DNA of 64,000 bases, taken from assembly GCF_006345805.1 (NCBI RefSeq), contig NC_043007.1, forward strand, positions 68,138,001-68,202,000, written 5' to 3'. Source of the DNA: Octopus sinensis. Taxonomy: Eukaryota. Below, piece after piece: positions 11 to 19,740 of the stretch. The notes under the pieces are model-generated. The model was not told the DNA's origin and did not search any database. It saw nothing but the letters and a program-made list of their open reading frames with translations. Numbering within the stretch: position 1 is the first letter of the stretch; each line of letters opens with the position of its first letter. The position numbers and the translations under genes are program-made.

Positions 11-46
11 ATCTTAAGCTTATGCGTTCGATCCTCACCAAGGGCA
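11..46 (+). pseudogene. Degenerate tRNA-Met exon 2 relic, cut by window edge
   Basis: atcttaagcttatgcgttcgatcctcaccaagggca aligns ungapped to exon 2 ATCTGAAGGTCGTGAGTTCGATCCTCACCTGGGGCA; downstream flank resembles that of the copies at 1271, 1911 and 2293. Confidence 0.7.
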
Positions 47-245
47 TATTGTTTTACTTTAATGTTTCTATTTTCTGATACAAAAATAATCTATTTTATA
101 GAAGGGTGTGTGTAGATATTTCTTAGATTTACAAATCTCCAAATTCTATTGTGGAATCTAAGGGGTTATGAATTCAACCCAGACTTCTGGAAAATGTTTT
201 TGATTCTGCATAATGTGTATACATTTATCATTTATCTCTCTAGAA

Positions 246-493
246 CAGGTGTTCTCATCCGGGGTCCGTATGGCCCTTGGGGGTCCATGTAAGATTTTGT
301 GATTGAAATTTATTTGGCTATACTTTTACAATACACACAATATTGCGATACTTTTGTTATATACAACTCCTAAACTTATTTGATTATAAAAACGTAATAG
401 AATTTTTTTTACACATCAAGTGGCTATGTGGGTCCATCCAAGTGAAATAGGAATCAAAGAGGTCCATAAGTAAAAAAAGGTGTTGAGAAAGTG
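246..493 (+). mobile_element. Non-autonomous hAT (Charlie-like) MITE
   Basis: Degenerate TIRs (caggtgttctca / tgagaaagtg), 8-bp TSD ctctagaa/gtctagaa with TCTAGA core; a relative lies at 27047-27339. Confidence 0.6.
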
Positions 494-1270
494 GTCTAGA
501 AAGTTTTTTTTACTATTCTGAAAACTCCCACATCAGCTCAACTCCCAATAGTACAATAACATCATGTGTATAGTTAGTCGACGAATAGCCGTAATATATT
601 TATATTTTCTAACAGATATACGAAGACACAGCCTGGCATATCGGATGTACTGAAGCAGTCAGGACATGTACTTTCACCATTTCCAGATAGTTCATATACT
701 GGGGCTGGTCACAGCGGGGCCTTTTCTAGTCAGAAGGTGTACTCGGTCAGTATGGAACAGTTGCTGTTCCTCTGTTATTATTGATGAGACGTTAGTCCAT
801 TTTGTAGCAACCTACTGTAGCCTATAACAAGCTGGTATCGATTACTTGATACACGTTGACAGCTAATATTCAAGGCGATAAAATAAAGACCCAGTTTTTG
901 ACTTATACTTAATCTTATTGACTCTGTATAATACTTGTGCTTTATTGTTTTTCGATTTCGGAAGGGTAAAAGGTAAAGTTGACTTTGAGTTTAGAACATC
1001 AAAAACCTTACACTATAATAAAGCAACATGTTACCTAATTAACGGGTAAAGCTTTTAACACAATGTAATAACAAACACAGCTAATTAATATTAATTAGGG
1101 TTATTCAAAGAAGGAAATTGCTAAAGTATATGGCAATCATTCTGTAAAAATTACCTGAGTAATAACGACATATGTAAGAAATAGTAGATAATGTATGCAT
1201 ATCAGGTGAGTGCATAACAATTAGAAAGTAATCATGTGTATATAACGAACTACTACGCCAGCTGTCACTT

Positions 1271-1365
1271 TCCACGGTAGCGCAGTAGGCACCGCGTCAG
1301 TCTCATAATCAATCCAAGTCTGTGGAGGAATTTGAAGGCCGTGAGATCGACTCTCCCCAGGAGCA
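1271..1365 (+). pseudogene. tRNA-Met(CAT) pseudogene with 22-nt intron
   Basis: Homologous to intact copies; intron atcaatccaagtctgtggagga; acceptor stem and T-arm mismatches (GAGATCGA instead of GAGTTCGA). Confidence 0.85.
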
Positions 1366-1910
1366 TGAGCTATTTTTTCTTGAAAAAATTCATTTTCTGA
1401 CACACTTGAAGATCAGCTTTATAAAGTAAGGTGTAATTTTCTTTTTAGATTTTTAAGTGATCGACTATATAGAGTGTGACCCACAAGTTGAAATGCTCTA
1501 CAAAACAGTCAAATGAATCCTGCTTGGTGGATAGATCCTAGTTGTAAAACACGGATCATGTACCAGGTACCAACCTACTAAGGACAGAAAGGAGATAACT
1601 TTAAAATTAACGAAAGTTTTATCAGTTTTATGTTCAAGTTCTAGTCTCCTCTAGGAGAATGTATATTTATTCGTTGACCGTCTATCTATACGGTGCTGCT
1701 AGACATTTAAGAGCTGATGTGATGTTTCTTAGTAAATAATTGAAAATTAAGAACATTTGTCCCTCATCAAAGATCGAAGTCATCAGCCTCAAATTCCTCA
1801 ATATTTTGGGATTTTTTAAATCTAACAAACATTTATACATTTCTTTATAAAATAGGTTTTCTTCCGTGTCAGAAAATATAATCATTCAACTTAAAAAAAT
1901 AAAAGTAATG

Positions 1911-17700: not shown

Positions 17701-18290
17701 TTTCTACTCTAGGCACAAGGCTCGAAATTTTTTTGTGGGGAGGAGGCCAGTCGATTAGATCAACCTCAGTACGCAACTGGTACTTAATTTTTCGAACCCC
17801 GGAAGGATGAAAGGTAAAGTCGACCCAGCGGAATTTGAAATCAGAACGTAAAGACAGGCGAAATACCTATTTCTTATTTCTTTACTGCCCACAAGGAGCT
17901 ACACACAGAGGGGTCAAACAAGGACAGAAAAACAAATTAAGTCAATTATATGGACCATAGTGCGTAACTGGTACTTATTTAATCGACCCCGGAAGGTTGA
18001 AAGGCAAAGTTGACCTCGGCGGAATTTGAAATCAGAACGTAAAGACAGACGAAATAACTATTTCTTTGCTGCTCACAAGGGGCTAAACACAGAGGGGACA
18101 AACAAGGACAGACAAACGGATTGAGTCGATTATATCGACCCCAGTGTGTAACTGGTACTTAATTTATCGACCCTGAAAGGATGAAAGGCAAAGTTGACCT
18201 CGGCGGAATTTGAATTCAGAATGTCGCGGCAGACGAAATACTGCTAAGCATTTCGCCCGGCATGCTACCGTTTCTGCCAGCTCGCCGCCT
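17701..18290 (-). mobile_element. Multimeric family A SINE (three tandem body modules)
   Basis: Module ggcaaagtYgacctcggcggaatttgaa..cagaa recurs at ~17830, ~18020 and ~18205, with one head and one tail. Confidence 0.75.
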
Positions 18291-18566
18291 TAAGTAACCA
18301 TGTAATAAAAGCATTATCGGGAATAAAAGCAAAATTATATATTTCATATGCTCATCCAGGAAGAAAATTTATCTCCCTTGCACTGTAATGACAAAGTCGG
18401 TATTGAACTAAAACTTATCGAGTTAATTACATAAGTTCATCACGTGCAATGTTTCATAGACCTCAAGTTACTACAAAGCTTCTTAACCTCCAGCTGTTGA
18501 AACTTTGGCATTCTTCTGGGTCAATGGTCGAGAGTGTGCATTTTGTTTTTGGAGTATTTATAGATA

Positions 18567-18850
18567 TCTTTATATATAAAAGTGAAGTTGTGTGAGTGTC
18601 TGTCTCCTACGATTTAGATTCCTAACTACTCCCACATTTTGCGGTGCAGTGTAACCAAAAGCGGGTATCTTATAGTCGTGATTCATATCGAGCCCTTCTG
18701 GGTATTAGCGCGTGTCTATGATGAGTCTATGATTTAAAAAAAAATTACCATCGTTTTTTCCCATTTTTAATGCATTTTTTGGCTATTATATAAAATGCTT
18801 ATACAGTTATTTCCCTTACAAGCCCGAGCAACGCCGGGCGATATTGCTAG
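18567..18850 (+). mobile_element. Complete non-autonomous Helitron (284 bp)
   Basis: A|TC 5' end, GCCCG-AGCAACGC-CGGGC hairpin at 18822-18839, 3' CTAG|T, no TSD. Confidence 0.75.
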
Positions 18851-19567
18851 TAGAAACTAAATAAGAAAGCAAGTCTGATTTAGGTTTGGAAAGTAAGTTT
18901 TGTTTTCTAGATGTAGATGTGACTGTGGTTATGAAGTTTGATTCCCAACTACCTGGATTCGGGTTCAGTTTCATTGTATGACCCTTTGGACAAGTGTCTT
19001 TTATGGCCTCGGGTCGACAAATGCCTTGTGAGAGGCTGAAACTATGTAAAAACTCTCCTCTCCTCCTCTCTCTCCCCTCTCTGTCCTCTCTCTCTCTCTC
19101 ACCCTATACATGTATATGTATGTATATGTGTATGCGTGCATGTGTGTGTGTATGTAGGTATGTTTGTGCGTGCGTTAGTGTGTGTGTGTGTGTGTGTGTG
19201 TGTGTGCGCGTCTGCGTGCTTGTTCTTGTTTTGTCTCCTCAACCACTTGACAACCAGTGTAAAGTTGTTGATATCTCGACTATGCTCAAGGTTATTTCCC
19301 TTGCATTATAATAACAGAAAAATATTTGCAATTAATGTAGAATAAGAATCAAATAGCTATAGAAATAGTTAATTAAAAGCAATTAAAGATATACAAAAGA
19401 GTAATTGGAATATATCGTGATAATTACTTGATCATTTTCTCACTGGTAATGCTATATATGGGAGAGGTAGTTATTTTAAATTAACAGTAAATTAAATTAA
19501 ATCGATGAATTAAATGAGAAGTTAGTCGGAAAGTAAAAGTATTTATGTAGTCAAGTTTAGGAGGACT

Positions 19568-19740
19568 TCACAGGCAGCGCAGTAGGTAGCTCCTCGAGGT
19601 CAAGCGACATAGTATCAGTTAGGCACTGAGGTCGATGTAATCGACTTGATACCTATGTTTGTCCCCTCTGTGTTTAGCCCCTTGTGGGTAATAAAGAAAT
19701 AGGTATCTGAAGGTCGTGATTTCGGTACTCAGCTAGAGTA
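19568..19740 (+). pseudogene. tRNA-Met relic with a SINE fragment at the intron position
   Basis: 5' half tcacaggcagcgcagtaggtagc; SINE A fragment ~19612-19704; exon 2 atctgaaggtcgtgatttcgg starts at 19705; cluster-type upstream flank at 19300-19560. Confidence 0.7.

Follow-up and report, generated by a model that had tools for sequence, protein, structure and literature searches.

Intron-bearing elongator tRNA-Met(CAT) genes clustered in Octopus sinensis DNA, with related genes in metagenomes

Why does an animal chromosome carry a cluster of elongator tRNA-Met(CAT) genes that are each interrupted by an intron, and are such genes likely to be in working order? The question is raised by a stretch of 64,000 nucleotides of Octopus sinensis (NC_043007.1, positions 68,138,001 to 68,202,000), which is called the window here and in which positions are counted from the first base. 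According to a GtRNAdb-based survey of 576 eukaryotic genomes, the animal families rich in introns are Tyr-GUA, Ile-UAU, Leu-CAA and Arg-UCU (PMC12168002, in the accessible part of that source). The initial annotation of this stretch had likewise placed animal introns in the Tyr, Ile, Leu and Arg families and had held Met introns to be typical of plants, which is fair by the same part of the survey. It had also regarded intron-bearing Met genes of this kind as under-described, and within the limits of our search the literature on intron-bearing tRNA-Met yielded archaeal and plant papers; automatic genome annotation may well list such genes already without comment.

The answer argued for below is that the window most probably holds working genes for elongator tRNA-Met(CAU) that are transcribed by RNA polymerase III (Pol III) and form a cluster evolving by birth and death, and that their transcripts would need splicing by TSEN and RTCB. 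Such a cluster extends a known kind of feature and is neither a new mechanism nor a local novelty. In model animals intron-bearing tRNAs are processed by TSEN and RTCB, and the excised introns can persist as circular RNAs (tricRNAs) (PMC4536317; PMC12168002, accessible part).

Split genes and relics in the cluster

Ten tRNA genes of 94-95 nt each scored above the gathering threshold of the Rfam tRNA model (RF00005). All are in the first 15 kb, and the model gave no above-gathering match in the rest of the 64-kb window. Nine of them reached 52 bits and one reached 43.4 bits. Each match spans the whole model (positions 1-71), the insert being treated by Rfam as 23 extra nt in the anticodon loop, and removal of the intron in silico leaves a standard cloverleaf tRNA. 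An exact-string search returned nine copies of GCCTCGGTAGCGCAGTAGGCAGCGCGTCAGTCTCATA + intron + ATCTGAAGGTCGTGAGTTCGATCCTCACCTGGGGCA, with exons of 37 and 36 nt that are identical letter for letter. The intron is 21 nt long in three of these nine intact genes (5372, 11208 and 13066) and 22 nt in the other six, and a T4-T8 run begins 2-7 nt past the last base (position 73) in every one. Chance is not a reasonable source of nine identical split genes. We relied on Rfam and exact matching because ARAGORN missed most copies, or labelled them Leu-TAA or unknown, in its default bacterial mode, and placed the introns inconsistently in its intron mode.

Four of the intact genes are on the minus strand. 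The gene at 1911-2005 (51.9 bits) has exon 1 at 1969-2005, a 22-nt intron at 1947-1968 (ATCAAACTAAGCACGTTGAGGA) and exon 2 at 1911-1946, and its standard precursor fold comes within 0.1 kcal/mol of the minimum free energy, with an anticodon-intron helix of 5 bp. The others on this strand are 3270-3364 (22-nt intron ATCAAGTAAAGTCTTTAGAGGA), 5372-5465 (21-nt intron ATCAAGTAATTATACAGAGGA) and 11208-11301 (21-nt intron, again ATCAAGTAATTATACAGAGGA), the last being the inverted-duplicate partner of 13066-13159 by self-BLAST. The five on the plus strand are 9792-9886 (22-nt intron ATCAAACAAGATATGCTGAGGA), 12504-12598 (22-nt intron ATCAAACAAAATAGGTTGAGGA), 13066-13159 (21-nt intron ATCAATTAATTATACAGAGGA), 14146-14240 (exon 1 14146-14182, intron 14183-14204 with ATCAAGTAAAGTCTTTAGAGGA, exon 2 14205-14240) and 14632-14726 (22-nt intron ATCAAGCAGCTTATGTTGAGAT). 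Rfam, the exact exons and the predicted fold agree on each of these genes. The tenth copy, at 11775-11868 on the minus strand, is the one with 43.4 bits; in alignments A29 is changed to T and T31 is lost, and both lesions break the anticodon stem. Its intron is identical to that of its inverted partner at 12504-12598, and to judge from these alignments it is probably a young pseudogene.

More decayed copies were found by nhmmer with a profile built from the ten copies and were then aligned. Three of the relics keep the intron: 1272-1365 on the plus strand, with intron ATCAATCCAAGTCTGTGGAGGA and about 10 exon substitutions (E 9e-23); 10293-10381 on the plus strand, where the 3' acceptor strand is gone (E 5e-22); and 58391-58478 on the plus strand, with intron ATCAAGCAAAATGTGTCGACAA and an anticodon that is now CGT (E 8e-16). 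In the relic at 2294-2376 (plus strand, E 4e-18) the intron is shortened by deletions and the anticodon loop is damaged, and the relic at 15862-15935 (plus strand, E 7e-11) has lost its anticodon loop together with the greater part of the intron. The 3' half alone is recognisable at 2892-2940 on the minus strand (E 3.8e-4), and the 3' half of the same variant, truncated by the window edge, is at 3-46 on the plus strand (E 2.6e-4). The relic at 19573-19736 on the plus strand is split by an insert of about 100 nt (E 0.09 for the 5' part and 2e-5 for the 3' part). The relic at 58391-58478 stands 38 kb past the cluster, and its intron start is still ATCAAGC.

This inventory agrees with the initial annotation, which had counted nine genes with letter-identical 73-nt exons, split at 37/38 by introns of 21-22 nt and followed by T4-T8, one near-intact copy and seven relics between 11 and 19740. 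Seven relics were likewise recovered there, and the one at 58391-58478, outside that span, is added as an eighth.

Identity of the tRNA and its predicted precursor

The window genes have the anticodon CAT, begin with GCC and end with GGCA, and have G1:C72, T54 and a T loop of TTCGATC; the anticodon stem is TCAGT/TCTGA and contains no G:C triplet. Initiator tRNA-Met has A1:U72 and A54, and the foot of its anticodon stem consists of three G:C pairs. Initiator genes on metagenome contigs treated below (L009, L014 and others) start with AGCAG and have GGGCCCATAACCC and ATCGAAA. The window genes are thus of the elongator and not of the initiator type because of G1:C72, T54, the TTCGATC loop and the lack of a G:C triplet in the anticodon stem, and the elongator assignment made earlier is retained. 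Internal promoters could be read directly as an A box, TAGCGCAGTAGG, at positions 8-19 and a B box, GTTCGATCC, at 53-61. All nine intact genes therefore combine the two boxes with a nearby downstream T-run and with the purifying selection discussed below, which is the sequence make-up of Pol III tRNA genes.

Exon 1 ends in CTCATA (A37) and exon 2 begins with ATCTGA (A38) in all ten window copies. The intron is therefore at 37/38, one base 3' of the anticodon, as in a tRNA intron of the TSEN type. Since intron and exon 2 both begin with ATC, the junction can slide from 37/38 to 40/41 with the mature product unchanged, and its placement is ambiguous by 0-3 nt on sequence alone. The conserved ATC start of the intron is a copy of the first three bases of exon 2, and this repeat may be a trace of the origin of the intron or a requirement as yet unrecognised. 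In all ten copies the intron ends are constant (ATCAA at the 5' end, GAG(G/A)(A/T) at the 3' end), and the middle 11-12 nt are variable.

The constant ends include the G at -3, which can pair with C32 in ten of ten window copies. The eukaryotic splicing endonuclease is known to need a C32/intron -3 pair of this type (reviewed in PMC4090602). In the copy at 14632 the base at -2 is A and not G, and the pairing with U31 is kept. When six copies were folded without constraints, several took on the standard eukaryotic pre-tRNA shape or came close to it. When the standard structure was scored explicitly, it was 0.1-3.5 kcal/mol above the minimum in all nine intact genes, with 4-5 anticodon-intron pairs. 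In this fold the anticodon stem is retained, positions 31-35 form a helix with intron positions -2 to -6, in which CUC(A) from the loop pairs with (U)GAG near the 3' end of the intron, the 3' splice site is inside a 3-nt bulge and the 5' splice site is unpaired. In these models the introns of all nine genes have the structure needed by the tRNA splicing endonuclease and look spliceable. Because the intron-containing pre-tRNA fits the form recognised by the endonuclease, mature tRNA-Met at these loci would depend on splicing.

Two other structures were rejected. The strict archaeal bulge-helix-bulge motif fails on direct reading, as the inner helix past the 5' bulge does not form, and the intron, at 21-22 nt, is too short to contain a box C/D guide RNA.

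Selection, duplication and repeats

Among the nine intact genes, exons are 100% identical in 36 of 36 pairs, intron cores are 39% identical (shuffled baseline 44%) and 100-nt flanks are 63-66% identical (baseline 52%). Invariant exons beside diverged introns and flanks are, on this comparison, the mark of purifying selection on the mature tRNA sequence, and the same conclusion in the initial annotation is borne out by these figures. The relics in the window illustrate how unselected copies decay. Several of them keep an intron with the ATCAA start, and since relics also carry the intron, it predates the expansion of the cluster.

The exon identity could also be due to very recent duplication or gene conversion without functional selection, the copies being neutral or dead. 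Tandem tRNA arrays are subject to concerted evolution, and young duplications are present here: on self-comparison the region is a patchwork of repeated units, each some 500 bp long and 66-93% identical, and identity is 90-93% around 3270, 9792, 11208, 13066 and 14146. An inverted duplication, delimited by self-BLAST, has its left arm at 11134-11986 and its right arm at 12369-13235; the arms are 93% identical and contain two tRNA units each. However, most pairs of genes have near-saturated flanks and intron cores at the random level and yet show no exon difference at all. The inverted-duplication pair 11208/13066 has zero exon differences as well, for which the chance is about 0.005 at 7% divergence by our own arithmetic. 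A single conversion tract is no explanation, because a diverged intron core separates the two identical exons; conversion would need to have acted independently on two stretches, each about 36 nt long, on either side of that core. The eight relics, moreover, display the decay that copies without selection undergo. We therefore regard an origin of the exon identity without selection as very improbable.

A further alternative is that the copies are a tRNA-derived repeat, similar to a short interspersed element (SINE), or an assembly artefact, and not genuine tRNA genes. The window is in fact repeat-rich, and another tRNA-like family is present at 3849-3920 (minus strand), with related copies at 41799-41878 and 59201-59240. 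That element has an internal duplication of GGTTTAGTGG, is labelled by ARAGORN as a tRNA with a 4-base anticodon, and probably represents a tRNA-derived SINE family. In the Met units, by contrast, a complete cloverleaf at 52 bits is followed within 7 nt by a Pol III terminator, so that no SINE body or tail would be transcribed. The directly adjoining terminator, the perfect cloverleaf and the clustering of the copies are all unlike a tRNA-derived SINE, and the distinct flanks and the six or seven intron alleles point to separate loci, not to a collapsed or inflated repeat. The probability that the copies are SINE-like or artefactual is put at a minute level.

The reading preferred here, that of a cluster of working genes, may be pictured as follows. 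Local tandem and inverted duplication of units of about 500 bp has generated copies, and loss has followed; selection holds the 73 exon bases of nine copies constant, one copy has only recently been damaged, and eight have decayed. Each unit would be transcribed by Pol III, with termination at the T run. The TSEN endonuclease would then cut both ends of the intron and RTCB would join the halves, as for other animal tRNAs (PMC4536317; PMC12168002, accessible part). The excised intron of 21-22 nt might, as a speculation, be circularised like the tRNA introns of fly and worm (PMC4536317).

In its general make-up the window is eukaryotic sequence rich in AT and in microsatellites, and it holds a Tc1/mariner element. 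Between two tRNA units there is a near-perfect palindrome of 122 nt at 10650-10771 (stem of about 58 bp, -91.6 kcal/mol, z-score -21), which may represent a foldback element or mark the midpoint of an inverted duplication. It is the source of sub-threshold 'mir-192' matches of Rfam on both strands; the sub-threshold 'microRNA' matches of Rfam in the span were rejected as TA/CA microsatellites. Units of about 740 bp are repeated in tandem at 6731-8880 (6900-8146 is 98.6% identical to 7640-8880), a region that is GC- and CT-rich relative to its surroundings. The Tc1/mariner transposon is at 50297-51988, with long inverted ends and an open reading frame of 287 amino acids at 50850-51713 (Pfam HTH_Tnp_Tc3_2 and DDE_3), the N-terminus of which is shorter than in relatives of 338 amino acids. 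A copy of the element with 97.1% DNA identity is present in the Logan assembly of SRR9969997, and one with 87% in ENA ERZ21867824 ctg122052l. An assembly gap of 100 N is at 44874-44973.

The intron in metagenomes and in known systems

Metagenome contigs were scanned with the pattern GCGCGTCAGTCTCATA, 8-38 free bases and TCTGAAGGTCGTGAGTTCGA, the intron itself being unconstrained. The same animal-type gene was found on at least 120 contigs from at least 63 assemblies, marine and host-associated, with at least 134 genes in total. The figures that follow apply among the matches listed. Introns are 13-36 nt long, every gene has a T-run terminator, and the exons are 94-100% identical to those of the window; in L012 the exons are identical at 73 of 73 positions and the intron differs. 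The matches listed and the window's own alleles together make 114 unique genes, of which 112 have C32:G(-3), 112 have U33 paired with A or G at -4, and 102 have an intron starting with ATC. The acceptor stem shows compensatory changes (pair 5:68 is CG in 70 and AT in 12, pair 7:66 is GC in 58 and TA in 29). Because of these changes and the T-run terminators, the matches are taken to be real tRNA genes of several lineages, and because none has a close match to the window introns, they are not from the species of the window. No intronless elongator Met gene was found in the window or on the listed metagenome contigs, which had been chosen for the intron.

One sample set, Ga0126343, is a metagenome of the coral Cyphastrea (bioRxiv 10.1101/391565), with seven contigs of 37-42% GC. 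In the twelve longest metagenome loci Rfam detected tRNAs only and no taxon-marker RNAs. When bacterial and archaeal genome records were scanned, there was one match, L124 (FXLX01000321.1), in the bin of an uncultured SUP05 bacterium symbiont. This contig of 1 kb, with 0.55x coverage, carries a eukaryotic intron-bearing tRNA-Met gene with the intron start ATCAA, and it is most simply explained as host DNA contaminating the symbiont bin.

The initial annotation had suggested that the intron could be a gain specific to cephalopods or molluscs. Such a recent gain, peculiar to that lineage, would be in line with the survey of 576 eukaryotic genomes, the accessible part of which credits Met-CAU introns to plants and fungi and not to animals (PMC12168002), and with the literature on intron-bearing tRNA-Met, in which archaeal and plant work and none on animals was found. 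Against it, exons of 94-100% identity, the same intron site, the ATC start and the G at -3 recur in at least 63 assemblies, the Cyphastrea metagenome among them, and the metagenome genes form several lineages that differ by compensatory acceptor-stem changes. The suggestion is therefore not upheld, and a recent gain in the cephalopod or mollusc lineage appears very unlikely. As far as the sequences can tell, the simplest history would be that an old intron, absent from the usual model animals, has been retained.

A more far-reaching proposal can be made only tentatively, and we consider it possible but doubtful: one old Met intron, with an AUC start and a GAG-N-N end, would be present in cnidarians and many marine bilaterians and would have been lost in vertebrates, insects and nematodes. 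The lineages that keep it would make all their elongator tRNA-Met by way of TSEN and RTCB, and the intron would be kept because the precursor is the form in which some step in the anticodon loop takes place, for instance the modification of C34 or of A37. Precursor-dependent modification of the anticodon loop is known for Tyr, Ile-UAU and Leu-CAA; to our knowledge, no intron-dependent modification has been described for elongator tRNA-Met.

Several points weigh against the preferred reading. Intronless Met-CAT genes elsewhere in the genome may supply most of the tRNA. The scan pattern needs 36 exact exon bases and excludes intronless genes, and so gives no ratio of the two gene types. Among the metagenome sample sets a host is documented for one, the coral, and the Ga0126343 contigs could derive from another member of the holobiont, the GC content of 37-42% giving weak support for the host. 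The shared motifs at the intron ends could be the result of convergence, as one and the same anticodon loop dictates one kind of pairing. GAGT is found near the end of plant introns as well (PMC11700998).

Introns of 13 nt (e.g., ATCTGAATTAGAA) characterise a coral type of the gene (L011, L030, L042, L048, L072, L075, L107, L111, L115 and others). They begin with ATCTGAA, which repeats the first seven bases of exon 2, and can form a hairpin of their own; the repeat may be a clue to the origin of the intron or to an alternative fold of the precursor. Since the insert starts with this copy, ARAGORN reads coral-type genes as intron-less tRNAs with a long variable arm, which would favour the view that the 21-22 nt insert of the window genes is likewise retained and that the RNA works unspliced, for example as a tRNA bearing an additional arm or as a small RNA of another kind. 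In the window, however, the insert start ATCAA is unable to serve as the 3' strand of the anticodon stem, where A29 would face A, and on direct reading no cloverleaf forms unless the insert is removed. The probability of a functional unspliced RNA is accordingly next to nil.

In another group of loci, from marine plankton (L009, L014, L016, L017, L067, L076, L106 and L110), an intron-bearing Met gene is located a few kb from an initiator tRNA-Met gene. The intron start is ATGAA and the T loop TTCGAGC at these loci, and the arrangement suggests that the pair of Met and initiator Met genes is conserved in that plankton lineage.

What is written on animal tRNA introns derives from vertebrates, flies and worms, with Tyr, Ile-UAU, Leu-CAA and Arg-UCU as the families named. 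One more intron-bearing family, the fifth, appears to be present and under selection here, in a coral holobiont and in many marine eukaryotes. If this is true, the picture for animals has been skewed by the choice of model species, the Met-CAU intron of plants and fungi may be matched by one in animals, and the animals concerned would depend on the splicing enzymes for the decoding of Met. The large natural set of intron variants is also a resource on the role of the conserved intron ends.

Compared with known systems, the window genes share with archaeal tRNA-Met the isoacceptor, an intron in the anticodon loop and a homologous endonuclease. The archaeal intron differs in being long, in forming a strict bulge-helix-bulge and in carrying a guide RNA, as in Nanoarchaeum equitans, where it encodes a box C/D small RNA (PMC3491384). 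In the flowering plants examined, all nuclear elongator tRNA-Met genes have an intron, which starts with GCT and has GAGT near its end (PMC11700998). The isoacceptor, the intron position and a GAG near the 3' end that pairs with C32-U33-C34 are the same as in the window, whereas the window introns start with ATC and plant exons are of a plant type (cf. L033). As in the Tyr-GUA, Ile-UAU, Leu-CAA and Arg-UCU genes of model animals, the window genes have a short intron one base 3' of the anticodon, a 32:-3 pair and a bulged 3' splice site, and every copy seen carries the intron; the difference is in the isoacceptor, as elongator Met is not listed among those families in the literature found. The metagenome genes (L001-L120 and L124) differ from the window at the acceptor pairs 5:68, 6:67 and 7:66, in their intron length of 13-36 nt and in intron ends of GAGTG, GAGCG or AGAA, compared with GAGGA in the window, and they share with it the intron site, the ATC start (ATCAA in L124 and L039), G at -3, A at -4 and the T-run.

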